A stretch of 64,000 nucleotides of DNA from IMGVR_UViG_3300026484_000007:62001-126000, one strand, 5' to 3'; shown: positions 18,176 through 60,684, counted from the stretch's first letter. Program-made: numbers and translations. Notes: generated by a model not told the origin, from the letters alone.

Positions 18176-19066
18176 TTAAAAGAAAACGTTAGTTAAATAA
18201 TATTTATTTAACTCTTCTAAAAACTGATCTTTCCAAGATCCTTTATCATCTTTTTCTTTTAATTTATTTTTTACTTCATTGAATATTTTCTCTGCAACTA
18301 TTATATCTTTATGATCGCCCCATTTGAATACATATCCTTTTTTATTTCTTTCTCTGAAAATAAAAAAGGTATTATAAAATATAATTTTTTCATATAAAAG
18401 ATTAAACGGATCTTCAAAAGATCTATAAAAGATCTCTAAAAATTTTATTATAAAAAGATCAATCAATCCCATTGAAATCATTGGCAATAATTCATTTTCT
18501 ATAATTTCGAATAGTTCTTTTTCATTTATTTTATCTTTAAATTTTTTAGATTCTTTAGATAATTCTGTCGTTAATAACATAGAAAATAAAAAATCATCAG
18601 GATGTTTATAAGTTATAGCAATTCTAAAAATATTAATGAAATAAAAAACGATGGAAGAGAGATCTTTTTTAGATCTCTCTTCCAATAAAACAAACGGCGA
18701 ATTTAAATTTAAAAAACTTTTATTCGATGAAAGAATTTTTAAAATCTCTTGAGAGAATATTTTAGACCAATTTTGATCTTTTTTATTTAGCATCCATTTA
18801 GGATCTATAAGAGTATTTAATTCTATTTGCGACTCAATTAATTTTTCATAAAGAATTGGGTCAATACCCTTTTCTTTAATTAAACTTGAAATTTTATCAT
18901 CTTGCTCTTGAATAATTTTACTAATTGATTTTTTTGCTGGGCTTGCAATTCCATTAATATTATCTACACCAGATACATTAATTATATTTTTTACAACTGA
19001 GTTTACTTGATCTACTAAAGATTCATTCTGAGCAATTATATTCTTCTGTATATCGTTTGTCAACAT
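18176..19066 (-). CDS. Hypothetical protein
   Basis: 296-aa ORF in the replication block. Confidence 0.6.
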   Translation of the reverse strand: MLTNDIQKNIIAQNESLVDQVNSVVKNIINVSGVDNINGIASPAKKSISKIIQEQDDKISSLIKEKGIDPILYEKLIESQIELNTLIDPKWMLNKKDQNWSKIFSQEILKILSSNKSFLNLNSPFVLLEERSKKDLSSIVFYFINIFRIAITYKHPDDFLFSMLLTTELSKESKKFKDKINEKELFEIIENELLPMISMGLIDLFIIKFLEIFYRSFEDPFNLLYEKIIFYNTFFIFRERNKKGYVFKWGDHKDIIVAEKIFNEVKNKLKEKDDKGSWKDQFLEELNKYYLTNVFF

Positions 19067-20978
19067 ATTTAACTCCTTTACATAATGGACAGATTACTAT
19101 TCCTTGTTGTTCAAGGATTTCATGAAATTTAATATCTAATTCATTAACTTTATTTTTTAGATAAATTAAATTTTCATTATTTTTCTGAATCTGATCTTTT
19201 AAAGATCTTTTATCTCTTAAATAATTTTCTATAGTTGTTTTGTCTTCCATAATTAAATTAAATTTACTTTTTATATTTAAGATTTTTTCAATTTTATTTA
19301 CTGTATCTTCAAAGGATCTTTTTTGGATCATTAAGTGATCTTCAAAAGATCTTTTTTGTCTTAATAGATTTAAAAAATAATTTAATCTTTGGAACTCTTC
19401 AATGAAAATTATTTTTTTATTTAATTCATCTTTTCTTTTTAATTGATCTTCAAAAGATCTTTTTTGGATCCTTGCTTGATTTTTAAAATTTAAAAATGAT
19501 TTTAAATATTCTAACCATTGATATTCCGCTTTAATTTCCCCAACCCTTTCAATTTTTTTATTAATATTATTCAATTGATCTTCAAAAGATCTTTTTTCGA
19601 TCCTTAATGTTTCTAAAGTTTTTTTATCATTAAATAATTCATTAATATATTCTATAATAAATTTCAATTCTAATATTTTTAAATCTTTTTGATATTGAAG
19701 CAATTCTGTTTTAATTGTATTGATTTCTTTATCGTAAGATTTAATTTCTTGATTGAGTTCAATGATTTCATTTTTAAAATCTGAAATTGCAAGGCTAATG
19801 TTTTCAGTATTAAATAAAAAGTTAAATACTTTTTCAATATCTGAGCTTTTAGATCCAACCATAAATAATTGATCGTATTGAGAACTATAAGCGATTTTTT
19901 CTGTTTGATTTCTCAATTCGCCTTTGATATTTTTATATAATTTTTTTATATCAAGATGTTTAAAACCTAACTTAGATACTGCTTCTTTAATTACAGAATC
20001 TGCAAGATTTTTACCTAAGTATTGCTCTCCTTCGATTTCAAATATAACTTTTTTAGACTTATAAATCATTACTAAAGGATCTTCAAAAGATCCATCTTCG
20101 TTTTCTTTATAAAATTCAATCTTAGAAACTTTAGCTCCGAGTCTTAAAAATCTTTCTTTAAAATCATTAAATAATAAAGCTTTAATTGCTCTAAGACTTG
20201 CACTTTTACCACAATTGTTTGGCCCTGATATAACAACGAAACCTTTATAATAAAATTCAATATCTTTTATACTTTGAAAATTTTGAATTCTTACTTTGTA
20301 TCCATTTAAGATCTTATCATTTGGAAGATTAGTTTTTTTATCTTCAATGAAGACAGTTTTTAAATCATTTTCATAAAAATAATTTAATTGATAATGAATA
20401 TGAGAACCAACGTTTAAATCGTCTGTTTGAGATACTAATACTAATGTAAAATCGTATTCTTCAGCAAACTTTCTTAAGAATAAACTTAATCTTTCTCGGT
20501 ACTGTGGAGAAACTTGAGCAAAGCTTTCATCAAAAATATAAAATTTATTTTTGCTATAAAAGTATCCTATTAAGATCTTAAAAAGAACACTAATGACACT
20601 AAGTACTCCACCACCGTTAGTTTCAAGTAATTCATCGTTTTTGCCTATGTATTTATCGCCTTGATAAAATGTAATATTGTATTTTATATTCTTAGAAGTA
20701 CTTTTTACTTCTTGCTCAATATTGATTCTAATATCATCCTGAAAAATATCTTTTAACGCTGAATTTATAATATTTAATATAAATTCTTTTTTGTATTCTA
20801 ATTTATAATTTTTTAAATATTCTAAAATAGATACGCTAAGATTCCTTAACCTTATTTTTTCAGATAAAGAAAAAAGAAGAGATTCTCGCTGAGCGAGAAT
20901 CTCTTCTTTTTGAATGATTAGATTTTTTAATTGATTAATCTGAACTTGCAGTTCCTGACTCTTCTTCATTTGATACAT
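19023..20978 (-). CDS. SbcC/Rad50 (gp46-like) ATPase with permuted domain order
   Basis: Signature TNGGG, Walker B YIFDESF and LVSQ come before IQNFQS and Walker A SGPNNCGKS; C-terminal CPLC zinc hook. Confidence 0.82.
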   Translation of the reverse strand: MYQMKKSQELQVQINQLKNLIIQKEEILAQRESLLFSLSEKIRLRNLSVSILEYLKNYKLEYKKEFILNIINSALKDIFQDDIRINIEQEVKSTSKNIKYNITFYQGDKYIGKNDELLETNGGGVLSVISVLFKILIGYFYSKNKFYIFDESFAQVSPQYRERLSLFLRKFAEEYDFTLVLVSQTDDLNVGSHIHYQLNYFYENDLKTVFIEDKKTNLPNDKILNGYKVRIQNFQSIKDIEFYYKGFVVISGPNNCGKSASLRAIKALLFNDFKERFLRLGAKVSKIEFYKENEDGSFEDPLVMIYKSKKVIFEIEGEQYLGKNLADSVIKEAVSKLGFKHLDIKKLYKNIKGELRNQTEKIAYSSQYDQLFMVGSKSSDIEKVFNFLFNTENISLAISDFKNEIIELNQEIKSYDKEINTIKTELLQYQKDLKILELKFIIEYINELFNDKKTLETLRIEKRSFEDQLNNINKKIERVGEIKAEYQWLEYLKSFLNFKNQARIQKRSFEDQLKRKDELNKKIIFIEEFQRLNYFLNLLRQKRSFEDHLMIQKRSFEDTVNKIEKILNIKSKFNLIMEDKTTIENYLRDKRSLKDQIQKNNENLIYLKNKVNELDIKFHEILEQQGIVICPLCKGVKYVDKRYTEEYNCSE

Positions 20979-21418: not shown

Positions 21419-22807
21419 TCACTCCTTTCTTTCTAAATTTTCTAAAGCTTTTTTTCTGAGAATACAACTACCACATTCACCACATGGTTCTCCATTTTTA
21501 GGATAATAACATGAGAATGATAAATTAAGAATTTCATAAAATTTATTTTTACCAAATTCTTTTACGAATTCTTTGATCATATTTGTCTTCGTTCTATTGA
21601 TATATGGAGCTTTCATCCCAAACCCCGTGAAGAATTTTCCACCATGATTTAATACATTTTCCATATTATCCATCCAAGCAGAATTATTATCACCGAAAAC
21701 TTGTCCTTCTGATAAATTTAATCCGAAGACAATTAATCCTAAACTTACTCCATCTTTTTCTGCGATAGATTTAATTATTTCTGCAAAAATAGAATTTCTA
21801 AAAGGAATATAACTTAAATTTTCTTCAGTTTCTCTTTCATCACCTTTTGATGATTTATCCGTAAGTTTTAAGTTAGTATCTAAAATAGATGCTAATCCAT
21901 TAATTATATTTTTTACATCAATAATTCTGAAAGAATATTGATAATCTGGAAAGTCTTTTTTTACTAATTCAATAAACTTTTCAGTAGCAGCAATTTCTTC
22001 TTGAGTACTATTATTACCATAATCAAAATAAATAAAATTAATTTTGATTGCATCTTCATTGAAAATCAACGAAATGTGTTTTTCGATTTCATCAATTACT
22101 TTATAAGCACTTAATGAAATATCCATTCCACCACTAAAACTTATATAAATATTTTTATATACGTCTGATGGCCTATCGCAATGAGCTTCTGTTTTTATAA
22201 ATACACCATCCTTAAAATTAAATTGTGGATCCATGCTATAAATTTTTAAATTTTCGTGTTCATGTTTCCAAAGACCCATTCCTTTATTGACGATATTGTA
22301 TTCGTCGAAATCTGGGAAAATCTCAAGATATGTATATAATCCTTTAATGAAATTTTCTGGTAAATCAGAATGAAACATTATTGCTTCAGTATCAACTGTT
22401 AATTCTTTATTTAATTTTTTTTCAACTTCTTTATCATTCGAAATTGTTCCATGAACCCAATACCAATCATGTTCATTGATAAATGGAGGCATTGTTTCTA
22501 ATCCAGATTTTTCCATTTCAGGTTTCTGTCTAGAAAATAATACTAAGTGACATTTTTGAAATAAAAAAAGCGATTGTTTTTTTAATTCTTCAAAAATTTT
22601 ATCAAAAAAATCATTGTACGTATCTTCAAAAGATTCGCCTTTGCTGATTATAGATTTATAACTACTATACGGATTTCCTAACCACAATAATGTGAAAGAA
22701 TAACCATCTCCACCTTTTTTATTCAATTCATATTCTAATAATTTTTTATTAGATAATAAATCCATTATATTCTTAATTTGATCATTGCTGTAAAGTATTT
22801 GACACAT
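21419..22807 (-). CDS. queC: Gat-QueC: Ntn glutamine amidotransferase domain fused to 7-cyano-7-deazaguanine synthase
   Basis: N-terminal M-C, HGTISN and VDTE in the GATase-II part; SFSGGMD PP-loop, YIPFRN, SCY..PCGECGSC..R. Confidence 0.88.
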   Translation of the reverse strand: MCQILYSNDQIKNIMDLLSNKKLLEYELNKKGGDGYSFTLLWLGNPYSSYKSIISKGESFEDTYNDFFDKIFEELKKQSLFLFQKCHLVLFSRQKPEMEKSGLETMPPFINEHDWYWVHGTISNDKEVEKKLNKELTVDTEAIMFHSDLPENFIKGLYTYLEIFPDFDEYNIVNKGMGLWKHEHENLKIYSMDPQFNFKDGVFIKTEAHCDRPSDVYKNIYISFSGGMDISLSAYKVIDEIEKHISLIFNEDAIKINFIYFDYGNNSTQEEIAATEKFIELVKKDFPDYQYSFRIIDVKNIINGLASILDTNLKLTDKSSKGDERETEENLSYIPFRNSIFAEIIKSIAEKDGVSLGLIVFGLNLSEGQVFGDNNSAWMDNMENVLNHGGKFFTGFGMKAPYINRTKTNMIKEFVKEFGKNKFYEILNLSFSCYYPKNGEPCGECGSCILRKKALENLERKE

Positions 22808-27022: not shown

Positions 27023-27059
27023 TCTTTCTCCTTTTAATTTTTAATTTTTTTTGAAAAAT

Positions 27060-27170
27060 AAAAAGGATCTAAAAAAGATCCTTTAATAAAAAGGATCTAA
27101 AAAAGATCCTTTAATAAAAAGGATCTAAAAAAGATCCTTTAATAAAAAGGATCTAAAAAAGATCCTTTTT
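27060..27170. repeat. 28-bp tandem repeat x4 (aaaaaggatctaaaaaagatcctttaat)
   Basis: ggatct at 27065, 27093, 27121, 27149; each unit is a GATC-N7-GATC hairpin. Confidence 0.95.
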
Positions 27171-27177
27171 GACTAAG

Positions 27178-28932
27178 TTAAATAACTGGATTCCATTCAA
27201 TTTCAAAGTTATCTTTTTCAGATAGAATTCCTATGTCATCAATAAGTATACCTAAAACATCCGAAGGATCTTCATGAATTTTAAAAGCAATTTCATCGAA
27301 TCCTTGAATAAGTTCTTGATACACTTTTCTTAATACCGAATCTTTTCCATCTTTCATAAAATTACGAATCTCATTATAAAAATCTTTATCAATAATTAAT
27401 AGATTTCCTGATTCATCGTAAGTCAAAGTGTCTCTAGTTTCATCAGCAATTTCGACTCTAACTTCTAGATCTTCTTGATCTTCATATGCAGCTTCTGTTT
27501 CAATTACATTTGCCCATTGAATACTATGATATTGATGGTTTCCACTGATAAATAATGCAGCCCCAACAGGATGCATTTTTAAAGATATATTTTTGATCGT
27601 AATTTTAATTTTCCCAGATTTTTTTGGCTTATATTTATTATAAAGTCTTTTTAAATCTCCAGGAAATTTTTCAATTAAATCAAATAATTCCATTTGATTA
27701 ATATCATAAATACTTCTTAATTGAAGAACTTCTTTAATCTCTTCAAGAAAATCTTTTTCAGTTTGTCCTTGAAGGTTTGTAGCGATAGAAATAGATTCTT
27801 TTCTGTTTGCGTCTTTTCCTCCGAAAGCTCCGAATCCGTAACTAAGTAAATCCTTTGAATTTTTTGATCCATATGATTCATAGTCATATCCTGAATACAT
27901 TCCATATCCATAAAATGAATTTTCAATATTTTCAGGAATTACCATATCTTGTGGTTCGTATGATTCAAGGATTGCCTGCATAATTATTTCTAATTCTGGG
28001 ACACTATCTTGAATTCTAAATTTTTTTACTAACAGTTTAGATATTCTTTGAGTTTCTTGTCCAAAGAAAGCTTTAAATCTATTCGATGGTACAACAAATT
28101 CTTTATCTTGAAGAAGTCCTACCATAGTAGGAATTTCTTCAACTGTTCCAACGGCTCCTTTATCCTCATTAGTCGGATCCACCTGTTGGATATTAAAATA
28201 TCTACATTCTGTTGTAAATAGTTCAGCATCTTTATCACAATAAAGAACACTATCTACTTGATGTAAATCCTGTGCTTCTTTAACTCTAAAGATAACACCA
28301 GGATTAAGAGGATTGTTTCTAAGATCAGTTCCAGAGAACCCAAATCTTCCTGGGTGTCTATGAATTGACCCAACCTCTCCTTCGACGAATTTTACTTCGT
28401 ATCCTTTGTCAGTAAATAATTTTTTTGGAAATGCTTTAATAATTTTTTTAGCAATTTCCATCGATAAAGGTTTAATCTGTTCAGAAACTTGATTAACCTC
28501 TACAAGATTGAAATCTACGCTTCCAGTCGTAACTTTTTGTGGAAAATTAAAATATACCGTTGGAAACGTTAAAACTACAACTTCATTTTTATCATTTTTG
28601 ATTTTTATTTGCAGCGCTCTAAAGTGAAACTGAAATTCACTTCCGTGAGCAATTGGTAAACATTTTTCTTGAATTTTATTTAAAACTGCTTGTTTATGTC
28701 CTACGAATAAAAGATGATCATCTCTCGAACTCTCAGTTGGTGTACTATAAGATTTTGCTTGATAACCATAACTATTATCATAACTATTATCATAACTATT
28801 ATATGAACCTTTTGTATTTACTACATTCCCTGTATTCATTGTATTGATATTTCTCATGTTATTTCCTCCATCTTTTTTATTTTTTTTCTCTGCGTTTAAT
28901 AATGTTTTTTGTGTTAATTTATTTCTTGCCAT
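27178..28932 (-). CDS. JAB/MPN (JAMM) metallo-isopeptidase domain protein
   Basis: GSIHRHPGRFGFSGTD (HxH..SxxD), upstream Glu in HGSEFQF, PQKVTTGSV element typical of prokaryotic JABs. Confidence 0.75.
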   Translation of the reverse strand: MARNKLTQKTLLNAEKKNKKDGGNNMRNINTMNTGNVVNTKGSYNSYDNSYDNSYGYQAKSYSTPTESSRDDHLLFVGHKQAVLNKIQEKCLPIAHGSEFQFHFRALQIKIKNDKNEVVVLTFPTVYFNFPQKVTTGSVDFNLVEVNQVSEQIKPLSMEIAKKIIKAFPKKLFTDKGYEVKFVEGEVGSIHRHPGRFGFSGTDLRNNPLNPGVIFRVKEAQDLHQVDSVLYCDKDAELFTTECRYFNIQQVDPTNEDKGAVGTVEEIPTMVGLLQDKEFVVPSNRFKAFFGQETQRISKLLVKKFRIQDSVPELEIIMQAILESYEPQDMVIPENIENSFYGYGMYSGYDYESYGSKNSKDLLSYGFGAFGGKDANRKESISIATNLQGQTEKDFLEEIKEVLQLRSIYDINQMELFDLIEKFPGDLKRLYNKYKPKKSGKIKITIKNISLKMHPVGAALFISGNHQYHSIQWANVIETEAAYEDQEDLEVRVEIADETRDTLTYDESGNLLIIDKDFYNEIRNFMKDGKDSVLRKVYQELIQGFDEIAFKIHEDPSDVLGILIDDIGILSEKDNFEIEWNPVI

Positions 28933-29027
28933 AAGTTTCTCCTTGTTTTTTTAATTTTTTTTATTTTTTAAATTTCTTCGGTATTTATAATGCGCCCCAA
29001 AGATAAAGCTAAAGCTTGGCGCATGCA
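28933..29027 (-). promoter_or_regulatory. Shared leader A (GCGCC hairpin, TATAAATA, A-tracts, AAGGAG)
   Basis: Near-identical to 30719-30801 and 31974-32060. Confidence 0.8.
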
Positions 29028-29129
29028 AAAAGAATAATAATTATTCATGAAATTAATGGAGAGTTTCGTCCGTAAGTTTTTAATTCTTTTAATTAACTTT
29101 TTAATTAAAGAGATCTAAAAAAGATCTCT

Positions 29130-29210
29130 TTAAAAGTCATTTTGATATCCTAGCATATTTAACCAGCTAAGAAAAATCAAAATCATTAGTATTTCTCCCA
29201 TTAATTCCAT
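29130..29210 (-). CDS. Putative 26-aa hydrophobic peptide MELMGEILMILIFLSWLNMLGYQNDF
   Basis: Hand-translated; AAAGGA RBS; followed by a GATC hairpin. Confidence 0.4.
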   Translation of the reverse strand: MELMGEILMILIFLSWLNMLGYQNDF

Positions 29211-29255
29211 GTCAAATCCTTTACTTTTAATTTATTTTTTTATTTATTTTTTTAT

Positions 29256-29702
29256 TTATTTTTTTATTTCATTTTGAAACCATTGAACTCTTTTACCTAT
29301 CGGTAAAGGTTCTTCTGGCACTAATTTATATTTAGGAAGAAGTTTTACTAATTCTTCGTAGTAATCTCTTCCTGCTAAAATTAAAAAAGTGATCTCTGAA
29401 AGATCACTTTTGAATTTTTCTTTTAACTGAGTATAAACTCTTTGAGCCCATTCTTTTTTTTCTTTTGGACTCATATTCTTGAGTGTAACGTCGTACTTCT
29501 CAATCTTTTTGAATGGATGTAATAATCCATGTTTTGCTGAAATGATGAAAATTTCATCATTTCTCGGATCTAATTTTGCTTTTTGCAAAGCCCAATTCCA
29601 ATGAGCTTTAAAAAGCATACTTGGAGAGTATAATTTATACGCCTCCATTTTATTATTTAATTTCTTGCTAACGCAAGAAATTAAGGCTACCTGTTTCTCC
29701 AT
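29256..29702 (-). CDS. DUF6884-like protein
   Basis: LISCxxKK, A.xLY.xS..F, IISAKHGLL, YDVTL, LAGRDY, L.IG.R motifs. Confidence 0.7.
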   Translation of the reverse strand: MEKQVALISCVSKKLNNKMEAYKLYSPSMLFKAHWNWALQKAKLDPRNDEIFIISAKHGLLHPFKKIEKYDVTLKNMSPKEKKEWAQRVYTQLKEKFKSDLSEITFLILAGRDYYEELVKLLPKYKLVPEEPLPIGKRVQWFQNEIKK

Positions 29703-29704
29703 TT

Positions 29705-30718
29705 TTATTCTCCTTCAGATTTAAACACAACACCTGGCAATGTTTTTTGCCAAAGCATTTTTGTAACTTCCATAGCTCCGTATGAAAGTTCCTTATATCT
29801 TCTGTGGATTATTTCACTAAACCACATTGAGTTCATATTAATTTTTGATAGGGTTTGCCATCCTCTATATGTGTTATTATCATGCGAACCCGTACAAACA
29901 TTATTTTCACGTGAATCGTGGTTTGCTTTTAAGTTTCCACTAAGATTTCCTGGTAATGAAATTCCTTGAATTCCTCCACCAGATGTTTTTATCGTTCCCC
30001 ATCCAAAATACGGAAGAACCATTCCTTTTGAAATAATTTGGAATGGAACTATAATTGATGGAATCACCGCCTTTCTTTCGATTTTAATTTTTCCCGAAAT
30101 TAACGCTAACGAAAAAACATCGTCGAAATTTTTTTCTTCTTCAACGACGCGACTTGATAGTTTTGCTGTTTCAGTAAAACTATTCCAAGTATACGCAGCG
30201 ATAATTGCATTCAATTCGATTGCTTTATTGTATTCTTCAAGATTTTTTTCGACTTCATTTAAGAATTCAAAAATCATTACAGTCCCTTTTGTGTTTAATA
30301 ATTTTTCTTTTTTTGGACTTTTTAAAATTGATAATAATGTTCCAGGATGCATTGGATTGATTAATAATTCATCTCCATCTACATCTGCAATAAAAAGCAT
30401 TCCTGCGAATTTATTCGTAGTATCCAATATTTGAATTCCGATTTCTAGTGCTTTTTCTAAAGTCACTTTTAATTTAAGAACTTTATCTGATACATTATCA
30501 TAAAATGTGCCTGCTGTAAAATACTCAATTGAAGAATACGAATCAAATACATCATTGTAATTTTTTACAACTTCTATGATCTTATTCCAATCGTTTTTAA
30601 TTGGGATAACGATGTCTCCCTTATCGTTAATTATTTCTAATCTTTCTGTGCTTTCTTCACTTCCGTTTCTAAAATCATTAAATTCTTCGTTTAACACTGC
30701 ATTAAAAAATTCAACCAT
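29705..30718 (-). CDS. Putative prokaryotic E2-like (UBC-fold) protein
   Basis: Only Cys lies in SGNL..NNVCTGS..GW, resembling the Prok-E2 N..VC.G site; flanked by E1 and JAB genes. Confidence 0.45.
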   Translation of the reverse strand: MVEFFNAVLNEEFNDFRNGSEESTERLEIINDKGDIVIPIKNDWNKIIEVVKNYNDVFDSYSSIEYFTAGTFYDNVSDKVLKLKVTLEKALEIGIQILDTTNKFAGMLFIADVDGDELLINPMHPGTLLSILKSPKKEKLLNTKGTVMIFEFLNEVEKNLEEYNKAIELNAIIAAYTWNSFTETAKLSSRVVEEEKNFDDVFSLALISGKIKIERKAVIPSIIVPFQIISKGMVLPYFGWGTIKTSGGGIQGISLPGNLSGNLKANHDSRENNVCTGSHDNNTYRGWQTLSKINMNSMWFSEIIHRRYKELSYGAMEVTKMLWQKTLPGVVFKSEGE

Positions 30719-30801
30719 AATTTCTCCTTGTTTTTTTAATTTTTTTATTTTTTTCCTTGGTATTTATAATGCGCCCCAAAGATAAGCTAAAGCTTGGCGC
30801 A
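30719..30801 (-). promoter_or_regulatory. Shared leader B
   Basis: Identical to leader C over ~85 nt. Confidence 0.8.
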
Positions 30802-30836
30802 AAAACGCATAAGCGTAAAGTTTTCTAATTGCTTAA

Positions 30837-31973
30837 TTACATGCTACAAAAAAAACGTTCTTCTGAAGAATCGTTTTTAGCTTCAGTAATTTCTTTACTA
30901 CCTTCTTCATCTTCTACGATTTCTTCTTTCCACTCGAAACCTTTTTTGATTTCATTTTTTTTCTTTTTCGATAATTGATTGTAATCAAATTCGAAAAGCT
31001 CTTCTCCATTTTCAGCATTATAAATTTTTTCTGGGTTAGAGAAAAGTTCGATCAGCTTGTAAGTTGCTACCCATAAGTTTAGTAGCAATACTGGTGTGTC
31101 GATAGAGCCGTATGTCTCAACAACTCCTTCTGAAATGTTTGGACATTTTGTGATTCTTATAGAATTTCCACTATGTCCAACCATAATAAAATTTGCTCCT
31201 TTTTCTGCTAGATATTTTCTAGTAGAAAAATCTGGTGCTCCAATGAAAATAGTATCAGGATTATTTTCGATGATTTTATCGATTTCATCTTTGCTCAGAT
31301 AATCCCTCACTAATGTCGTGGAATCTGAAAGATCAAATTCTTTATCAATTGTATCTAATTTAGATACAACATTCCCACGTGTTTGGAATCTACTGAATGC
31401 TTTATGCATTACTTGTTTCCCAACACGAAAAATATTTGTCAAAGCCCAATTATCTTTCTCATAAATAGAAAGATTTTTAAATAGTGGTCTTGCGTCGAAT
31501 ACGTCTTGTAGAATAGTTAAATTCCATAAAATGTTACTCATTGCCCCACCGAATCCGATCATTACAATTTCCAGATCTTTTGCGGGAATACTTTTTGAAC
31601 CACTTGCTTTAAAATAATTTTTCAATACCGAACTCGCAAATGGCAAGTCTTTAAAATAAGTTTTTGAAATTCCTGCTCCAGTCATGTAGTTAGTAAATCC
31701 ATCTGTTAAAAGATAAGATGGATAAAGTTCATCTGAACTTAAATCTTGATTGCAAACATCAGCTATTCCTGGATTTAGGAATGCTAAATTAGGATTAAAA
31801 ACAATTCCGTTTTTTTGAAGAACTTTTTTAACCTCATCTGGATCATTACTATCTAAATCAAATATTCTATGAATAAAAACATTATCTGATCCTAATTCAC
31901 TCTTTTCTGAAAATCTGTGTCTAATTTCTTCTTGTAGATATTCCACGAAACTTCTGTTAATTGTCTCTGCCAT
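30837..31973 (-). CDS. ThiF/MoeB/E1-like adenylyltransferase
   Basis: VMIGFGGAMS (GxGG), IYEKDNWALTNIFR (D..SNLxR equivalent), SKL, IFIGAPDFSTR (D..R). Confidence 0.8.
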   Translation of the reverse strand: MAETINRSFVEYLQEEIRHRFSEKSELGSDNVFIHRIFDLDSNDPDEVKKVLQKNGIVFNPNLAFLNPGIADVCNQDLSSDELYPSYLLTDGFTNYMTGAGISKTYFKDLPFASSVLKNYFKASGSKSIPAKDLEIVMIGFGGAMSNILWNLTILQDVFDARPLFKNLSIYEKDNWALTNIFRVGKQVMHKAFSRFQTRGNVVSKLDTIDKEFDLSDSTTLVRDYLSKDEIDKIIENNPDTIFIGAPDFSTRKYLAEKGANFIMVGHSGNSIRITKCPNISEGVVETYGSIDTPVLLLNLWVATYKLIELFSNPEKIYNAENGEELFEFDYNQLSKKKKNEIKKGFEWKEEIVEDEEGSKEITEAKNDSSEERFFCSM

Positions 31974-32060
31974 AATTTCTCCTTGTTTTTTTAATTTTTT
32001 TATTTTTTTCCTTGGTATTTATAATGCGCCCCAAAGATAAGCTAAAGCTTGGCGCATGCA
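31974..32060 (-). promoter_or_regulatory. Shared leader C
   Basis: Identical to leader B. Confidence 0.8.
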
Positions 32061-32892: not shown

Positions 32893-34296
32893 TTATTTTT
32901 TAGGTAATTTTAAAAAAACTTGTCTTAAATGTCTTAATTCATCTAACCAGATTTCGCGAGGATCTTGTTTTTCAACCTCTTGATATTTCTGTTTAAGTTC
33001 TTTAATTTTTTCATTAAATTCTTGAATTTTTTCGGTAGTTAATGACCATAAAGGCATACTTAATAAATAATCGTATTTATCATTAATTTTATAAAAATCG
33101 AACTTTTTCAATTGATTTTCAATGTTAGATTTTTTACGTTTTTCTATGATAATTTCTTTTTTAAAGATTTTTTCTAAGAATTTAATTTTATTTTCTGTAA
33201 TTATAATATCATATTTTATTTGATCAAGAATAAATAGTTTTCTTTTATGATAAAGAGTTAATCTTTCAATAATCCAATCTTTTAGATACTCTGCTAATGT
33301 ATCATATTCTAAAATAGTCTTATTTTCATAAGAATATTTAAGAAAAGTCAGAGTTTCAGAATCTTTTGTAATTAATTTAAATAATTTTAATAATTCTTCT
33401 TCTGATTTTTCATAGATCTCTATTGGAACCTTAATTTCAAAATAAAATGAATTCTTTACGCAATTGTCCGACCAATCAACTACAATATTTTTATCTTCTA
33501 ACTCAGATATAATATTAACCATTTTTTCTCTATCGTATCCAGGTGGAACTTCATTAATAATTATAGTTCCATAACGTTTAGTGGATTTGCTTTTTTCAAG
33601 ATTTCCATAGAAAATAAATTGTTTATCATTTTCTCCACGTTCGATTTTTCCATTATAATATGGAAATTTTACTGGAATATATTTTGGAATTTTCTTAATT
33701 TTTCTTTCAAGAATTCCAATTAAAAGATCAATAATAAAATTTGGGTCTCTTGGTAAAATACTTGCACTATAACCTACCGCAATTCCATTAAAACCATTAA
33801 TTATACTTAATGGAATTATAGGCATTAAATACAATGGTTCAATTTTCTTTCCTTCAAGATATTGCTCTTCGTAAATATTTTCATCAATTTTCGGAAAAAT
33901 TAATTTAGCGATATCACTAAATTTTCCACTTGTATATCTTGGACTACTCGCCGCTTGATTGGTTCTATATCCAAATGAACCTTTTGGCTCAATTAAGTTA
34001 ATATTGTTTTTATAATCAGCTGCTAATGTTTCAAAAACGTTATATGTAGATTTATCTCCATGCAAATAATTAGTCTGATTATACACCAATGAATAAATCT
34101 CCGCTGTCTTAATTTTTTTATTCGGGATCTTGGAAAGAACGTATAATTCTTTCCTTGCCGTTTGACTTAAAGTATCATGAAAACTAGGCATCTGTTGAAT
34201 TAATTTATAAACAGAATAACTTAAATATTCTTTATCTGCAAATTCTTTTACATTGTATTCTTTAGCCATAAAATTCTCCTTATTTTTATACCGCAT
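32893..34296 (-). CDS. Type II DNA topoisomerase, GyrA/ParC-like subunit (T4 gp52-like)
   Basis: YLHGD, PKGSFG, SPRYT catalytic Tyr, NGFNGIAVGYS, YLLSMPLWSLT. Confidence 0.92.
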   Translation of the reverse strand: MRYKNKENFMAKEYNVKEFADKEYLSYSVYKLIQQMPSFHDTLSQTARKELYVLSKIPNKKIKTAEIYSLVYNQTNYLHGDKSTYNVFETLAADYKNNINLIEPKGSFGYRTNQAASSPRYTSGKFSDIAKLIFPKIDENIYEEQYLEGKKIEPLYLMPIIPLSIINGFNGIAVGYSASILPRDPNFIIDLLIGILERKIKKIPKYIPVKFPYYNGKIERGENDKQFIFYGNLEKSKSTKRYGTIIINEVPPGYDREKMVNIISELEDKNIVVDWSDNCVKNSFYFEIKVPIEIYEKSEEELLKLFKLITKDSETLTFLKYSYENKTILEYDTLAEYLKDWIIERLTLYHKRKLFILDQIKYDIIITENKIKFLEKIFKKEIIIEKRKKSNIENQLKKFDFYKINDKYDYLLSMPLWSLTTEKIQEFNEKIKELKQKYQEVEKQDPREIWLDELRHLRQVFLKLPKK

Positions 34297-36190
34297 TTAT
34301 ATCGAATAATTCGATGTTTTTCTTAATTATATTTTTACGGTATTCTCTATCTTCTTGCATCCAAGCTAATAAAGTTTTTTCATCTTCTTCCGTAAATTTA
34401 AATGTTAATAAAAGATCTTCGAAAGAATATCTTTTGAACATCTCTTCCCATTCTTCTTCAGTTAAAGAACCTAAACCTTTTTTATAATCAAATACACAGC
34501 CTTTTGCTTCTTCAGATTTTTCAAATTCTTTTAATTCTTGAAAATCAAAAATCATTTTATCAATTTTATCATTTTTATATATAACTACAATCGGTGTTCT
34601 AAAACTATGAATTTTGCCAGTTTTAAGATACGTTTGAGCAGTCATATAAAAATAAGAAACAAGTAAAATATTAATATGGAATCCATCGAAGTCAGCGTCC
34701 GCACCGATAACGATATTTTCATATTCTAATTTTTCTTGATTACCACTAAAATCAATTCCAAGAATTTTAGCAATTTCCATTAATTCTTTATCGGTTTTTA
34801 ATTTTTTAGGATCTTTTAATACATTACTTGTCTTTCCTTTAATAGGATAGAATCCATAAAAATCTCTACCTACACCATTTATAATACTTCCTATCGCAGA
34901 ATCTCCTTCTGAAATGATAAAGTATTTTTTCTGTTTTCCAGCTTTCCAATATTTTACTGGAGTTTTAATTTTCTTTAAAGTTTTATCAATTTCTTTTTTA
35001 TCCTGAACCATTTCTTTAGCTTTATAAAAGTCAATAATCGGTCCAGTAATTGATTTGTCTTTATAGATTTTATCAATAAATCTACTTTTAGCAATTTCTA
35101 AAACTTCATTAGCAATTTCTGGAAATTTAGATGGAGTATTTGTTGTCGCTGTTTTCATTTGAGAAGTAAATCTCGGATTTGGAATATTTCTATAAACGAC
35201 AATTAAAAATATTTTATTTCTGACATCAGCAAATTTAATATTTTTATAACGTTTTTGTAATTTTTCGGTTACTGGTATTAATATACGTCTTTCAACGTAT
35301 TCTAATGTGCTTCCACCTTCATAAGCATTTACTCCATTTACAAAATGGATAAAGTTATAAGTATCTGAACCACCAACTGCAATACTAACATTATCTGATT
35401 CAATTATATTTAATTTTCCATCAAAGAATAATTTATTCACTGAATTAAGATTATTTATTTTAATAACTTTTCCATTAAATTTAAATTGAATTTCTGGATA
35501 AGTAACACTTAAAAAAATTAAATCAAAATAGATTAAATCTTTATAAATTTCATCAATTTTATCTAATTTGAATCTTTCGAGATCTGGATAAAATGTTACT
35601 TTTGTCCCCATTTTTTTCTTTGAATCAGTAACTTTGTAATCAACATCTTGCATATTATTTTTACAAGTTACCTTAAAGAATTTATTTCCATCATCGGTTT
35701 CTCCAATAAATTTTTTACTAAAAATAGTAGCTAATGAAGATCCAACTCCATTCTGACCAATACTTGTATTCGAAGTATTACTATCGTCAAAATTACTTCC
35801 AGCTTTTAAATTGGTCCAAGCCATTAAAGGCATTAAACTATCAGGAATTTCATTTCCTTGACTATCATAAGCTGGTTTAATAGGTATTCCTCTACCATTA
35901 TCTTCAACGACAAATTTTTCATCATCAATGATTATACTAATTTTATTAGCATAATTCCCTTGAGTTCTTAAGTATTCATCAATACTATTATCTAGCAATT
36001 CTCTCATTAATTTTAAAAGACCAGGAATGTATTCGATTTCATCAATAACTATTTTTTGATGATCTTCAGAAGATACGATAATAGGTCTTTTAATTTTTTG
36101 AGGAGTTATAGCTCCGATATACATTGGAGCTCTTAAGAGAGCATGTTCAATATCATTTAATTTAATGATTTTATTTTCTTGCATTTTCAT
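34286..36190 (-). CDS. Type II DNA topoisomerase, GyrB/ParE-like subunit (gp39+60-like)
   Basis: ELLDNSIDE, EDNGRGIP, GQNGVG, SEGDSA, PIKGK, DADFDGFHI, KGLGS. Confidence 0.93.
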   Translation of the reverse strand: MKMQENKIIKLNDIEHALLRAPMYIGAITPQKIKRPIIVSSEDHQKIVIDEIEYIPGLLKLMRELLDNSIDEYLRTQGNYANKISIIIDDEKFVVEDNGRGIPIKPAYDSQGNEIPDSLMPLMAWTNLKAGSNFDDSNTSNTSIGQNGVGSSLATIFSKKFIGETDDGNKFFKVTCKNNMQDVDYKVTDSKKKMGTKVTFYPDLERFKLDKIDEIYKDLIYFDLIFLSVTYPEIQFKFNGKVIKINNLNSVNKLFFDGKLNIIESDNVSIAVGGSDTYNFIHFVNGVNAYEGGSTLEYVERRILIPVTEKLQKRYKNIKFADVRNKIFLIVVYRNIPNPRFTSQMKTATTNTPSKFPEIANEVLEIAKSRFIDKIYKDKSITGPIIDFYKAKEMVQDKKEIDKTLKKIKTPVKYWKAGKQKKYFIISEGDSAIGSIINGVGRDFYGFYPIKGKTSNVLKDPKKLKTDKELMEIAKILGIDFSGNQEKLEYENIVIGADADFDGFHINILLVSYFYMTAQTYLKTGKIHSFRTPIVVIYKNDKIDKMIFDFQELKEFEKSEEAKGCVFDYKKGLGSLTEEEWEEMFKRYSFEDLLLTFKFTEEDEKTLLAWMQEDREYRKNIIKKNIELFDINAV

Positions 36191-36471: not shown

Positions 36472-36989
36472 TTTATCTCCTTTTTTAAAAACTCACTTGA
36501 ACCTAAAATTAATTTTTTTAATAAATTAACTGGATCAATATCTTTAGCTTCTATATATTTTAACTTATCAAATTCTTTTTCTAAAAAAGATAAATTAAAA
36601 TCATCCACAATTAATCCATATTCAATTTTATTATTTTTCATAAAATTTCTTATGGCTTTTTCTCTATTATTGATTTCGTCAATGTAATTAATATTCAATT
36701 TTTTTACTATTTCAAATAATTCTTTAATTTCATCTTCGATCGAATCTTTTATAGATTCTTTTAAGTACAACTTGTTGTTTTTTAATTCAAGAATACAAGA
36801 CCAAGAACTTGTAAGATAAATCTCAAAGCCTAAAAGATCACAGAATCTATTAAGAATTTCTACGTTTTGAGAAGTTTCTTTTTTTATAGATTCTAAATCA
36901 TATCCATACGATTTTCTATAATTTCCCCAAGGAATAATACAATCATCTAGATCCAAAAAAAGGATCTTTTTTAGATCTTTTTTAATCAT
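36468..36989 (-). CDS. HAD-superfamily (HAD_SAK-like) phosphatase
   Basis: LFLDLDDCI, LTSSW, LIVDD motifs. Confidence 0.72.
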   Translation of the reverse strand: MIKKDLKKILFLDLDDCIIPWGNYRKSYGYDLESIKKETSQNVEILNRFCDLLGFEIYLTSSWSCILELKNNKLYLKESIKDSIEDEIKELFEIVKKLNINYIDEINNREKAIRNFMKNNKIEYGLIVDDFNLSFLEKEFDKLKYIEAKDIDPVNLLKKLILGSSEFLKKEIK

Positions 36990-39742
36990 TAGAATCCTTC
37001 CCAGAAAGACATTAGGCTTTTCGTATGTTTTTCTTTCACTAAATCAAAATTATTTAGTACTCTAAAAAAGATTTTTTCTTTTAAGTCTTTTAAAATTTCT
37101 TGAATTATTTTTTCGTGCTTCGGTTTTACTAAGGAATTTTGAATTCCTCTTATTTGAATCATATGAATAAATCTTTCAATATTATTAGGATCGTTTTCAA
37201 TAGTATTATTTTCTTTTAACTCCTTGAATTTTTCAAAATTATTTAAAGCGAATTCCACAGTATATTTTAAATCTCTATCATTTGGATCTTCAATCTGGAA
37301 AATAAATGATGATAGATTTCGAACTTGTGTTGAGTATCCTCCAACGCAATGTTTCATAATTAATCCAATTCTTGATAATTCATTAGAAGTGTGTAGTTCA
37401 TAAACATCAATATTTTTATATTTATAATCTATCTTTTCATAAGGAATTAATGGTTCGCTGTTCTTTTTATATTCTTTAACCAGTTTTTCGATTATTGGAT
37501 CAATTAATTTTTCCATAAGATCCTCCATAGTATCAACTCTTGCTGTTACCAATGTCGAATGACCTGCTTTTCCAACTACAATTATATCATTAAATTTAAT
37601 CAATAAATCATTAATAAATTTAGGAATTTTTAATAATTGAGTTTTGATGCCTTCTTTACTTTCTCTTCTTGAAAATTTAAGTTTTTCATTTTTATGGAGT
37701 TCAGTAAATTCTTTTTTTATTCTATTTTCAAGAATACTATTAAAAAGAATAATTAAATCTATGTACTTTTCTTTTTTATATGCAGAATTATATGCATGAT
37801 ATAATTCACTATGATAATAAATTAAATTTAGAAAAGTATAGGTATCTTTCGAGTTTAATTTTAATAAATAAGGCTCAGAAATTAACATATCTAATACAAA
37901 ATATTTATTAAAATCTGGATTCATTTTCATAATTGTATTGAAATAATTAAGAATTTTCTTCTGCCCTTTTCTTAGAAATTCTTCTTCTAATTTAGATAAT
38001 CTAAAAGCAGAAGATGGGATTCCAAAATTTCCTTCAAAAAGAAATTCTTTTAGAGTTTCATTTTCTTTAAGCGACTCAATATTATTAAATAAATCATCTA
38101 ACTCTGAGTCAATATTTTTGCCTTGAAATTCTGCTTTAATTTTTTCAGTTAATTCAATACCAGAATTAAAAACAGTATCAACTGTTTGTAATAATGTATT
38201 TAAAAGATAGAATTTTTCTGGATTTTTCTTATAATCGATAAAATCAATATTATTTTTTTTCATATAATCCTGAATAGTTTTTCTTTTCGGGACTAATGAA
38301 TTTTTTTGAAGTTTAAAAAATGTTTCATCTTTCACATCTTGAAGATAATCCATTTTTTTCAAAAGCTCAGAGCTTCTCAATGAAACTCCTAAATCTTCTT
38401 TTAATAAATTCAAATCACGTAATAATTTTTCAAAGTATGAATTGACTTTGGTTTTTAATTTATCAGGAACTTTTGAATCAACGTATTTTTGAATTTTTTG
38501 AATTCTATTAAAAATTTCTTCATAGTAAATCGACATGATATAAAGCAATCTTAAATTTTTATACTTATCAGTATAAAATCTTTCATCTTTTCTTGATAAA
38601 TTCTTTTTAAATTCACTTATACCATCATTAATGAAATTACCAAATGGAGGCAGTGAAACTGCGGGTTTTGGAAAATCAATATATCTAGTTTTTACTTCTG
38701 GTAAAGTAATATGGAATTTTTCCATTCTTCTTTCATGTCTAAAGACAGTTCCGTAATTAAAATTTCTCATTTTAGATTCTAATTGATTAGATCTTAGCCA
38801 TTCAAGATAATCTTCATGAATTACAATTCTATAATATTTTAGTCCGTTTTCTGGTGTAAATAGAATTCCTATTTTTCCATTATTAAAATCGAAAGCATCT
38901 AAAACTTCTTGAGCATACATTTCGAATCTTGAAAGATTGTCTTTAAAAGATATATTGCTATAGTATCTATCAACAACGTTAATTATATTAACAACTTGAT
39001 TTGAAAAAACTATATCTGTTTTTTCGCTATTGCGAACCTTAACTGATTTTTCTTTGAAATCTGTTCGATATTGTGTATAAACGACATTTTCGAACATATT
39101 GTCATTCTCATCATCTCTGATAAATTCATGTTCTAAATTTAATAAAAATACATCGATATCTTCTGGACTTGAATTATATCTATTTAAAAAACTTTGGATT
39201 ATTGCATCAGGAAAAGATCCTGCTAATAAAGCAATTGGTTGAGTAATAAAATTTCTAAGAATTTTTGGACTAAAATTTTTTTTCAAATTCTTTTTTATAA
39301 GGTCAATGAAAAAAGTATCATAAAATTCTGATAAAGTATAAATTTTATCTTTATCAAAACTTTCATAATTTTCTTTTAATGTTTTCATAAAAAACACTTG
39401 AGGGTTAATATTATGAGGAAATGCATATAAATCATTGATTTCATAAATAATTTGATGTATAGTTGGATCAAAATATATCTCAAAAGCGTTATGAATTAAC
39501 GCTAATAAATTACTGTATTCGTCTAAATATTTTTTCTTAGATTCTGATATTTCACAAAATATTTTATCATGATTGACTTTAAATGTATTACCAATTTCAT
39601 TTTTTACTATCAATTTTGATACTTCATCTGGGCGAATTAATTTTGCATCTAATTCATTTAATTTTCCTTGAAATTTTGCAGGTACTAATAACTCATCTCT
39701 ATCTTGATTAATTATTTCGCTAAGTGATTTAATTCTTTTCAT
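36989..39742 (-). CDS. Large protein with C-terminal PcfJ-like domain
   Basis: EL..IG..MKHCVGGY, YTVE, QIRG..N. Confidence 0.7.
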   Translation of the reverse strand: MKRIKSLSEIINQDRDELLVPAKFQGKLNELDAKLIRPDEVSKLIVKNEIGNTFKVNHDKIFCEISESKKKYLDEYSNLLALIHNAFEIYFDPTIHQIIYEINDLYAFPHNINPQVFFMKTLKENYESFDKDKIYTLSEFYDTFFIDLIKKNLKKNFSPKILRNFITQPIALLAGSFPDAIIQSFLNRYNSSPEDIDVFLLNLEHEFIRDDENDNMFENVVYTQYRTDFKEKSVKVRNSEKTDIVFSNQVVNIINVVDRYYSNISFKDNLSRFEMYAQEVLDAFDFNNGKIGILFTPENGLKYYRIVIHEDYLEWLRSNQLESKMRNFNYGTVFRHERRMEKFHITLPEVKTRYIDFPKPAVSLPPFGNFINDGISEFKKNLSRKDERFYTDKYKNLRLLYIMSIYYEEIFNRIQKIQKYVDSKVPDKLKTKVNSYFEKLLRDLNLLKEDLGVSLRSSELLKKMDYLQDVKDETFFKLQKNSLVPKRKTIQDYMKKNNIDFIDYKKNPEKFYLLNTLLQTVDTVFNSGIELTEKIKAEFQGKNIDSELDDLFNNIESLKENETLKEFLFEGNFGIPSSAFRLSKLEEEFLRKGQKKILNYFNTIMKMNPDFNKYFVLDMLISEPYLLKLNSKDTYTFLNLIYYHSELYHAYNSAYKKEKYIDLIILFNSILENRIKKEFTELHKNEKLKFSRRESKEGIKTQLLKIPKFINDLLIKFNDIIVVGKAGHSTLVTARVDTMEDLMEKLIDPIIEKLVKEYKKNSEPLIPYEKIDYKYKNIDVYELHTSNELSRIGLIMKHCVGGYSTQVRNLSSFIFQIEDPNDRDLKYTVEFALNNFEKFKELKENNTIENDPNNIERFIHMIQIRGIQNSLVKPKHEKIIQEILKDLKEKIFFRVLNNFDLVKEKHTKSLMSFWEGF

Positions 39743-58809: not shown

Positions 58810-60444
58810 TTATATTTTAATCTTATTAGTTCTTCTTTTAATAAGCTGTGCCGGCTGAGAATTCTTTTTTAATAATGGAAAATAAATAGTGAACTTCATT
58901 GGTTTTTCTGGATCAGAAACCAATTTAACCTGATTGTACTCAAGCAAAACTTCATTCTCTTTTATTTCATTGATATATTGCTCAATTTTTCCACCCTCAT
59001 GTAATTCTGCTATGTACTTATCCAGAATTTCTTTTAAGATTAAAAAATCATTAATCTTTTCAACCCAGAATTGTTCTTCGTTTTCGTAGTTTCTATTTAT
59101 GAAATCTTTAAAAGATTCTCTAAAATATTTTCTGGGAAGAAAATCTAAAACCAATCTTTCTGTTTTTTTATCTAAATGATAGACTCCGTATTTGTCTTTT
59201 TTATTCAGGTATTCGAAAAAATTATATAAAAAATGTTTTCCGTGAGTTCTTTGATATTCCATAACTTCATAATTATAATAACTTGATGGAATTTCTTTCT
59301 TGAACATTTTAAAAAAGTCGTCCGAATGATAAATATTAGACACGTTCATCAAAGAAATATCTCCTCTCATATTATAATTCTTTTTCAAATACGACGTAAA
59401 TGTAGTTACCATAAATCGTTTTTCAAATTTATTTTTGATTATATTTCTAAGTGTCTCCGAAAAGAATTTCAAAATTTTCGCTGGATTATGTAATCTAATT
59501 TTTATTTTTTTAGATTTTATGTATTTATAATTTTCATGATTCTTAAACTCTGGATAATTCAATAAAGTACTCGTAAATTTTTTCATCGGTGTAGGATAAT
59601 TCATTGTATAAATTGATTTTTTTAAAGTAATTTTATTTATACTAAAGTTTATTCTACTCGGAATGATATTAGTAAAAAGATAAATTTTTCCGAATAATAA
59701 TTCAAATATATTAACCGCCTTTTTGATTCTTCTAATCATAAAAGGATTAGCATGAAGCTGATAATTTATTTGATCGGGCGCTATATGAATAGCTTTAAGT
59801 AAAAGATCAATATTCTTTCTGCTGTTTTCATCAAAGAGATTTTCGTTTTTTAAATACTCTTGGATCTTATTAGGATCTGATATAAAAAAGTATATAAAAT
59901 AATTAAACGAAAAAGATCGAATATTCATAAAGAAATGAAATTTTTCATCTATGTACTTTCTGAACTCTTTTTTATCTTTTAAATTTTCAGGTAAAGTATC
60001 TTCAAATAAATAATACACAAATGTTTCAAATATATTCAATCCTTCTCTATTTTGCAAAAAATTTCCTGTGCGGTCAGCAAACTCATTCAGATCTAAAAAA
60101 GATCTTAATTCTAAATTAATAAAAGAAATTTTCTTTCCATTTTTATCTTTAATTTCCATCTCGTTGAATAAAATTTCGAAAAGTCTCATATATCCAAAGA
60201 ACAAATAAAACACTTCATTGTGTGTAATTGATTCCATTTGAATTTTTAAGAAATTCTTAAATTCAAAACTGAAATAATTAAATAATGTTTTTAAAAAGGG
60301 ATCTTTAATAGATCCTTTATTCTCTTCAAAACTCTTTTTTAAAGTTTTAATTAAAACCGGCAATGATTCTTTAAAATTCTTTTTTGCCTTCGCAACTTCT
60401 CCATACGGCATCTGAATTATTTTTATTCTTTTTCTTTTAGCCAT
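58810..60444 (-). CDS. Hypothetical basic protein between RNAP genes
   Basis: 544 aa, AAGGAG RBS. Confidence 0.7.
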   Translation of the reverse strand: MAKRKRIKIIQMPYGEVAKAKKNFKESLPVLIKTLKKSFEENKGSIKDPFLKTLFNYFSFEFKNFLKIQMESITHNEVFYLFFGYMRLFEILFNEMEIKDKNGKKISFINLELRSFLDLNEFADRTGNFLQNREGLNIFETFVYYLFEDTLPENLKDKKEFRKYIDEKFHFFMNIRSFSFNYFIYFFISDPNKIQEYLKNENLFDENSRKNIDLLLKAIHIAPDQINYQLHANPFMIRRIKKAVNIFELLFGKIYLFTNIIPSRINFSINKITLKKSIYTMNYPTPMKKFTSTLLNYPEFKNHENYKYIKSKKIKIRLHNPAKILKFFSETLRNIIKNKFEKRFMVTTFTSYLKKNYNMRGDISLMNVSNIYHSDDFFKMFKKEIPSSYYNYEVMEYQRTHGKHFLYNFFEYLNKKDKYGVYHLDKKTERLVLDFLPRKYFRESFKDFINRNYENEEQFWVEKINDFLILKEILDKYIAELHEGGKIEQYINEIKENEVLLEYNQVKLVSDPEKPMKFTIYFPLLKKNSQPAQLIKRRTNKIKI

Positions 60445-60477: not shown

Positions 60478-60632
60478 GAAAACTTGTGTTTCCAGAACGT
60501 TAAGCATCATTGGATACACAAAGATATATAGCAGTTCTAAAAATTTTAGAACTGCTTTTATATCGCTTGTATCTAAAATAGATGCTACGTGGAAAATCAA
60601 AGTTTTTACAGTTTTTTCTAGCGACAAAAAAA
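60478..60632. repeat. Dispersed palindrome copy plus T7-GTCGCTAG-A6 motif
   Basis: Close match to the 39776 copy. Confidence 0.9.
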
Positions 60633-60637
60633 GAAGA

Positions 60638-60668
60638 GTATTTATATAGCGCCCTCTTCAACGGCGCT
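60638..60668 (-). promoter_or_regulatory. GCGCC hairpin + GGGCGC-NN-TATAAATAC putative phage promoter
   Basis: Same core and spacing as the three leaders at 28.9-32.1 kb. Confidence 0.5.
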
Positions 60669-60684
60669 CGATTTAATTTATATT

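Follow-up and report, generated by a model that had tools for sequence, protein, structure and literature searches.

Introduction

E1-based systems of prokaryotes belong to cofactor and sulfur pathways and, as has lately emerged, to antiphage defenses such as Cap2/Cap3 of the cyclic oligonucleotide-based antiphage signaling systems (CBASS), Bil, and Bub. Here we describe three linked phage genes coding for an E1-like protein, a protein with a single cysteine (the Cys protein) and a protein with a JAMM-type motif, which lie in a 64,000-nucleotide stretch (the window; IMGVR_UViG_3300026484_000007:62001-126000) of the 272,602-bp viral contig IMGVR_UViG_3300026484_000007. A preliminary description of this DNA proposed a ubiquitin-like conjugation system; the E1 fold, the JAMM motif and the linkage of the genes stand, but a UBC-type E2, a thioester-forming E1 and a ubiquitin-like modifier (Ubl) are not supported. 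The reading that we favor, with somewhat less than even confidence, is a phage-encoded, ATP-dependent carboxylate-activating module of three enzymes, in which the E1-like protein acts together with a Cys protein of new fold and a JAMM-motif metallohydrolase.

The systems to be compared first are CBASS type II Cap2/Cap3 and the E2-E1 plus JAB operons without a dedicated Ubl described by Iyer et al. 2006 (PMC1779556, rows 6a/6b). The trio shares with these an E1-fold enzyme, a Cys-bearing partner, a predicted JAB-type hydrolase and the lack of a Ubl gene, as well as mobile and tightly linked genes, and by analogy it would work most like such Ubl-less E2-E1 plus JAB systems. In Cap2/Cap3 and the 6a/6b operons, however, the Cys partner is a UBC domain fused to an E1 with a catalytic Cys, whereas in the trio the two are separate proteins, of which the Cys protein matches no solved fold and the E1-like protein has no conserved Cys. 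Moreover, those systems are bacterial defenses, whereas the trio is essentially confined to phages.

The E1-like protein also resembles ThiF, MoeB, MccB, PaaA and TcdA in its E1 fold, its nucleotide-loop and N..R motifs, and in having no conserved catalytic Cys. It differs from them in having a helical domain added at its N-terminus and a D-N motif whose Asp varies; no gene for a ThiS/MoaD carrier or a peptide substrate accompanies it, and it is paired with a JAMM-motif protein and a Cys protein of orphan fold. Bub (Ye et al. 2024, PMC11601596), which has a recognizable E2 and Ubl, oxyester intermediates and a serine protease, is similar in being a diverged bacterial pathway of the E1/E2 type, with an E1 devoid of a catalytic cysteine and a chemistry unlike the textbook relay. 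Unlike Bub, the trio has no recognizable E2 or Ubl, the partner Cys is invariant, and the third protein carries a JAMM motif. The module is a variation on E1/JAB systems and not a standard ubiquitin-like system.

Results

Organization of the trio locus

The five open reading frames (ORFs) of the locus are all on the minus strand, and they, their motifs and the three leader copies that precede the trio genes lie where the preliminary description placed them. In transcription order they are:

30837-31973, minus strand, E1-superfamily (ThiF/MoeB/PaaA-like) protein, 378 aa, predicted from an AlphaFold model and Foldseek
29705-30718, minus strand, Cys protein (earlier called E2-like), 337 aa, single Cys C275 in NNVCTGS
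29256-29702, minus strand, DUF6884 protein, 148 aa, Pfam PF21818 at 1e-34
29130-29210, minus strand, 26-aa hydrophobic ORF, a mechanical ORF only
27178-28932, minus strand, JAMM-motif (JAB-like) protein, 584 aa, HRHPG..SGTD

Database searches with the trio proteins (PADLOC, NCBIfam, PHROGs, Pfam, and PDB sequence and profile searches) returned nothing usable.

The E1-like protein

The AlphaFold model of the E1-like protein (predicted local distance difference test [pLDDT] 86.1, predicted template modeling score [pTM] 0.87) contains an all-helical N-terminal domain (residues ~1-125) followed by a Rossmann-type E1 domain (~135-320). A Foldseek search of the PDB with this model gave 36 matches at E<=1e-3, and since every one of them belongs to the E1 superfamily, the earlier assignment of an E1/ThiF fold to the protein holds. 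The best match is PaaA (5ff5; E 2.3e-6, template modeling score TMt 0.41), and the others include ThiF (1zud; E 3e-4, TMt 0.52), MoeB (1jwa; E 6.5e-4, TMt 0.53), and, with E up to 1e-3 and lower TMt, UBA7, UBA1, UBA6, APPBP1/UBA3 and SAE1. An FtsZ-like reading of the sequence GGAxxN, which had followed from weak PDB matches, is ruled out by the fold result.

At the sequence level the protein is unmatched in Pfam, NCBIfam and PDB sequence searches; the Pfam ThiF model (PF00899) does not match it and matches one of 24 relatives, at E 0.15. Alignments by hhalign with E. coli ThiF and MoeB have E values of 0.02-0.03, below significance, and the one with ThiF (E 0.03, not significant) places GxGG, D/E..N..R and D-N-x-x-T-R in register; the MoeB alignment likewise has the correct register.

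Conservation was compared among the 24 relatives. Thirteen residues are invariant (G140, G142, G143, N147, E172, N180, R183, G266, H267, E286, Y288, G289 and N299), K205 is nearly so, and the family retains the motifs GxGGxxxN, E172, N180..R183, GAP-x-x-x-TR, GH267, E286-T-Y-G and N299. The conserved parts of the ATP site are the glycine-rich loop, the acidic residue after strand 2 (E172), N..R, and T251-R252. C277, the cysteine of TKCPN that had been put forward as the catalytic residue, adjoins a low-confidence loop, where the crossover-loop cysteines of E1s sit, and is present in only five of the relatives; no other Cys is conserved. Because a conserved Cys is lacking, a canonical E1~Ubl thioester relay is unlikely. 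The protein resembles the E1-like enzymes that adenylate without a catalytic Cys, of which ThiF, MoeB, MccB, PaaA and TcdA are examples.

Some distant members of the family have long N-terminal extensions (L013:5448-7064, and those of L053, L054 and L056, which are ~628 aa long); the extension in L013 has weak, low-complexity FliH-like matches.

The Cys protein

A word-index search recovered only five homologues of the Cys protein, and a profile search of 1.84 billion representatives recovered 301 (E<=1e-3), giving a family of 301 representatives at 50% clustering. Five residues are invariant in an alignment of 146 sequences (G106, N121, P236, N262 and C275), H124 is present in 145 of the 146, and Q227, G277, N294 and S297 are nearly invariant. 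The conservation of the protein's only Cys, anticipated by the preliminary description, is in this way borne out.

The proposed UBC/E2 fold is not. A model built from a 108-sequence alignment is of high confidence (pLDDT 91.8, pTM 0.88), and Foldseek finds no match to it in the PDB at E<=1e-3 (best E 0.17, TM <=0.2); UBC domains, Cap2, Bil and the Bub E2 are all missing from its top 50 PDB matches. The sole match in BFVD is an uncharacterized metagenomic phage protein (1.3e-10, TMq 0.59). The C-terminal half is modeled as a five-strand beta-meander, a long ordered loop that carries N262 and C275, and then helices. The order of these elements is loosely like that of a UBC domain, but Foldseek backs no relationship; C275 and N262 differ from the HPN..C of E2 enzymes in spacing and flanking residues, and lie in a loop of an unrelated fold. 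The model points to a fold without a solved relative that bears a probable active site, and we do not regard the protein as an E2. Ten long members of the family carry no informative extra domain.

The JAMM-motif protein

In the third protein, a low-complexity N-terminus precedes the conserved core (~65-300), and the C-terminal half varies. The JAMM-type motif reported earlier is kept in 74 relatives: H191-R-H193-P-G, S200, D203, P211, G212 and D227 do not vary, and E99 and Q101 are absent only at alignment gaps. The protein is unmatched in Pfam (searched with 38 members), PHROG, and PDB sequence and profile searches, and hhalign against E. coli YicR, a RadC-type JAB protein, aligned only the HxHP residues. 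We refer to it as JAB-like on the strength of its motif.

Members of one subclade are longer (673-707 aa) and are encoded in loci L012, L023, L026, L036 and L049 between topoisomerase II and an SbcD-like gene. No hidden E1 or Cys-protein genes were found within 6-7 kb of these. In that subclade a conserved ~120-aa protein is encoded ahead of the longer JAB-like gene.

Co-occurrence and distribution of the trio

Loci with the JAB-like family were sampled from IMG/VR and Joint Genome Institute (JGI) metagenomes and then searched with hidden Markov models (HMMs). At least 24 distinct loci of this JAB-based sample have the three genes next to one another on one strand. A second sample, of three loci drawn from distant Cys-protein relatives and lying on 3-44-kb contigs beside helicase and primase-like genes, has the trio in order in every case. 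Both samplings together give at least 27 distinct phage loci in which the trio genes are neighbors. Contigs related to that of the window derive largely from hydrothermal-vent metagenomes. In distant relatives the genes form tight or overlapping operons without leaders, and the trio is kept where its order is rearranged: Cys-protein/E1/JAB in L008, JAB/E1/Cys-protein in L045, and also in L059. In two loci (L041:711-6277 and L042:4402-10010) the E1, Cys-protein and JAB genes are succeeded by another, diverged pair of E1 and Cys-protein genes, an arrangement in which one JAB-like protein serves both pairs. The three genes are functionally linked, as their proposed membership of one system had implied.

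The trio usually has either topoisomerase II and SbcCD-like genes or helicase and primase-like genes as neighbors. The module is phage-specific, and cellular genomes are essentially without it; among 185,579 bacterial and archaeal species genomes, the JAB-like gene occurs in only three small contigs of metagenome-assembled genomes. Searches of 50,697 GenBank phage records (one with blastn, and five with tblastn for which the queries were four proteins from the module's families, distant ones among them) gave no match, and two of the module's families are absent from PHROGs. The module was earlier attributed to jumbo phages; it is also found on small contigs and is not jumbo-specific.

Consistent with the earlier remark that no Ubl is visible, no conserved small or Gly-Gly-ended protein adjoins the trio in ~35 loci; a modifier encoded at a distance or by the host would escape this comparison.

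Leader elements

Each trio gene of the window is preceded by a copy of a leader, which the preliminary description had recognized as shared. The copies are:

31970-32058, minus strand, leader copy 1, before the E1 gene, with a GCGCC..GGCGC hairpin, TATAAATA, an A-rich tract and the Shine-Dalgarno sequence AAGGAG
30715-30803, minus strand, leader copy 2, before the gene for the Cys protein, matching copy 1 at 100% over 87 nt (31970-32056 against 30715-30801)
28933-29024, minus strand, leader copy 3, before the JAMM-motif gene, aligned over 28936-29022 with small indels
60600-60675, minus strand, leader copy 4, diverged, after the beta'-like RNA polymerase piece and ~220 nt before a 544-aa gene (58810-60444)
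L113:11992-12020 and L135:2648-2676, the remaining copies in the contig

The likeness is real. The 41-nt leader core has two matches against none expected in shuffles, and the 17- and 18-mers of the leader occur only at the three trio sites in the whole contig. The class is nevertheless wider than was first described: the architecture GCGCC-loop-GGCGC-NN-TATAAATA is found four times in the window (none expected) and six times in the contig. Since three of the six copies precede unrelated genes, of 544, 219 and 202 aa, the leader is not private to the trio; it identifies each trio gene as a unit with a start of its own within a single regulatory class. The expectation that further copies would lead to a modifier gene is not borne out, as none of these three genes has a Gly-Gly end or encodes a fold known by sequence.

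In all six copies, bases immediately 5' of GGCGC can pair with those immediately 3' of TATAAATA. The pairs are CTTTGG/CCAAGG, CTTTGG/CCGAAG, AAGAG/CTCTT and TTTAG/CTAAA; copy 3 has one extra loop base and reads CCGAAG instead of CCAAGG, with pairing to the loop CTTTGG preserved. Close relatives L001, L004 and L008 have their own leaders, of other sequence, before each trio gene, and relatives show analogous pairing changes (for example, GAGA/TCTC vs ACGG/CCGT in L004). The L004 leader also precedes unrelated small genes, none of which has a Gly-Gly end or a fold recognized by sequence. A second pairing around TATAAATA may thus be conserved, as an RNA pseudoknot or as a promoter DNA hairpin. 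The tests that bear on it were weak: single-copy tail shuffles gave no individually significant second pairing, the fold energy of the leader is no better than that of shuffles, and Rfam, its preQ1 riboswitch included, has no match to it. No sigma-70 promoter and no T-run terminator are called in the trio leaders, and TATAAATA, considered as a general promoter, was not found upstream of other window genes.

We take TATAAATA to be the T4 late-promoter consensus, and the layout of a putative pseudoknot with an A-rich tract presumably recalls the translational operator of T4 gene 32. The closest described analogues of the leader are the promoter early stem-loop (PeSL) terminator/promoter cassettes of T4-like phages (PMC2839356, PMC4122927), which are likewise short hairpin-plus-promoter-like repeats before single genes, near-identical within a genome and differing between genomes. 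Unlike these, the trio leaders have no detected sigma-70 promoter or T-run terminator and the second pairing brackets TATAAATA, and the setting differs in that the window phage encodes its own multisubunit RNA polymerase.

The DUF6884 gene, the 26-aa ORF and GATC hairpins

The DUF6884 gene overlaps the stop of the preceding gene by 4 nt and, as described earlier, is coupled to it in translation. Its product matches Pfam PF21818 with 119.9 bits against a cutoff of 30, as well as PADLOC PDC-M57A (2e-37) and, weakly, DpdC. The motifs CxxxK and (L/I)SAxxG, listed for DUF6884 in PMC11701544, are both present (CVSKK and ISAKHG); that paper predicts DNA binding and base flipping for the domain. The gene is beside or inside the trio only in the window phage and is several genes away elsewhere in relatives; it is an accessory and not a conserved part of the module.

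The 26-aa ORF is present at the site given for it earlier, but it is probably not a gene; relatives with tight trio operons have no room for a counterpart, and a sigma-70-like hexamer pair overlaps its start.

Two sets of terminator-like GATC hairpins flank the JAMM-motif gene:

29105-29133, no strand assigned, palindromic GATC hairpin following the DUF6884 gene and ahead of leader copy 3
27029-27196, no strand assigned, five tandem 28-nt GATC hairpins (AAAGGATCTAAAAAAGATCCTTT) directly after the JAMM-motif gene

They look like stacked bidirectional terminators. Three similar GATC hairpins lie ahead of the E1 gene in a relative (L001:8602-8712).

Genome context

The window has a G+C content of 25-30%, and from ~15.5 kb onward its genes are encoded on the minus strand. 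Genes of note outside the trio locus are:

19023-20978, SbcC-like ATPase
21419-22807, QueC-domain protein with an N-terminal extension of 245 residues
22881-24809, fusion of an AAA_33 kinase-like domain and a calcineurin-like phosphoesterase
32893-36190, topoisomerase II subunits, whose genes are also seen in relatives
36989-39742, large PcfJ-domain protein
55333-57495, beta-like piece of a split RNA polymerase (Rpb2_6, 1e-19)
60685-62697, beta'-like piece of a split RNA polymerase (Rpb1_2, with NADFDGD)

As multisubunit RNA polymerase pieces are encoded, the phage transcribes with its own polymerase, as do phiKZ- and AR9-type jumbo phages. QueC and PTPS (QueD-like) genes are also found in relatives (L012:12779-13585 and L008:1168-1758), and together these suggest 7-deazaguanine DNA modification in the group to which the window phage belongs. 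The kinase-phosphoesterase fusion resembles polynucleotide kinase-phosphatase and occupies the place of the SbcD-like gene in relatives. The PcfJ-domain gene is conserved upstream of the topoisomerase genes and has a counterpart in L001:1348-3513.

Discussion

In the carboxylate-activating module that we favor, the E1-like enzyme would use ATP to adenylate a carboxylate, as ThiF, MoeB, MccB and PaaA do, without forming a thioester of its own. The activated acyl group, or sulfur, would then move to C275 of the Cys protein, which would do the job of an E2 or a carrier without being an E2 by descent, and the JAMM-motif protein would either trim the substrate, exposing a reactive end, or reverse the linkage. 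Two candidates lead for the substrate: a phage- or host-protein C-terminus in the absence of a dedicated Ubl, as for CBASS Cap2/Cap3, and a carboxyl-bearing nucleic-acid base or small molecule. The invariance of catalytic-looking residues in all three families counts for an enzymatic module, and since the module as a rule lies among genes of replication and recombination, it may act early in infection or in DNA metabolism.

Several observations weigh against such a module. Position 248 of the E1-like protein, where the Mg-binding Asp of the D-N motif is expected, is D, N or T among the 24 relatives, and its register relative to D127 of ThiF is ambiguous, as the hhalign alignment may pair that residue with Pro247; adenylation itself is therefore only inferred. 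The motif of the JAMM-motif protein reads E..HxHx6Sx2D, with a spacing of six rather than the seven usual in JAMM motifs (E..HxHx7Sx2D). The longer JAB-like protein (~700 aa) stands in its five loci, all well flanked, with no E1 or Cys-protein gene nearby, so the JAB-like protein can work alone or with distant partners. The role of the Cys protein may also be unrelated to acyl or sulfur carriage.

Four other explanations have to be weighed. The first, which we consider unlikely though it survives best of the four, is modification of nucleic-acid bases: the E1-like protein would adenylate a base carboxyl in the manner of TcdA on tRNA t6A, and the Cys and JAMM-motif proteins would complete or edit a DNA or tRNA hypermodification. 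TcdA has no Cys, which fits the absence of a conserved one here, and the module sits in replication and recombination gene blocks. The QueC-domain gene at 21419-22807 and the QueC/PTPS genes in relatives indicate 7-deazaguanine chemistry, which includes a carboxylated intermediate, and in the window phage the DUF6884 gene, with its predicted DNA-binding and base-flipping functions (PMC11701544), is coupled into the operon. Neither DUF6884 nor QueC is consistently linked to the trio, however, and three small-contig phages have the trio with neither of them; neither a DNA transglycosylase nor any other DNA-modifying enzyme was found at the window locus.

Transfer of sulfur, by a ThiF/MoeB-type adenylase, a Cys persulfide carrier and a Mec+/QbsD-like JAB protein that together thiolate a cofactor, tRNA or DNA, is rather improbable. 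It would account for an E1-like protein that matches ThiF and MoeB and, like MoeB-type enzymes, has no Cys, as well as for the invariant Cys of its partner, and sulfur operons with E1, JAB and Cys-domain genes are known (PMC1779556). Yet a ThiS/MoaD-like carrier, a rhodanese or a cysteine desulfurase was seen in none of the loci.

We regard as very improbable the canonical cascade of the preliminary description, in which a thioester-forming E1 passes a Ubl encoded elsewhere to a UBC-fold E2 and a JAB deubiquitinase reverses the reaction. The confirmed E1 fold, the retained JAMM motif, the invariant Cys of the middle protein, the conserved order of E1, Cys-protein and JAB genes and the loosely UBC-like order of elements in the C-terminal half of the Cys protein all agree with it. 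It does not explain why a high-confidence model of the Cys protein matches no E2 although UBC and bacterial E2 structures are numerous in the PDB, why no Cys of the E1-like protein is conserved, or why a conserved Ubl or small Gly-Gly-ended protein is found neither near the trio nor behind the other leader copies.

Last, and the least probable of all, is modification of a short encoded peptide by the E1-like protein as in MccB or PaaA, that is, of a ribosomally synthesized and post-translationally modified peptide (RiPP), with the JAMM-motif protein as maturation protease; PaaA is indeed the best structural match and the 26-aa ORF lies inside the cluster, but relatives with tight operons lack such an ORF, the N-terminal domain is modeled as all-helical, unlike the peptide-clamp domains of MccB and PaaA with their beta strands, and no exporter or immunity gene is present.

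A further reading is a widespread, phage-only conjugation machine in which an unrelated Cys enzyme of new fold takes the place of the UBC E2 and tags a protein or DNA-linked target without a Ubl, as part of the replication and recombination program. This is unlikely, but if true it would mean that E2 chemistry has an analogue that evolved independently, and would be the first case of E1-based tagging by bacterial viruses. More broadly, the chemistry of the Cys protein could reveal a route of acyl or sulfur transfer that does not use a UBC domain, or a new step of nucleic-acid modification, and the hairpin-TATAAATA element may define a class of promoter or RNA operator for a phage with its own RNA polymerase. 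In contrast to the E1-based systems known from prokaryotes, the module is carried by phages and is nearly absent from the 185,579 cellular species genomes, and an understanding of its chemistry would show what use phages make of E1 enzymes.

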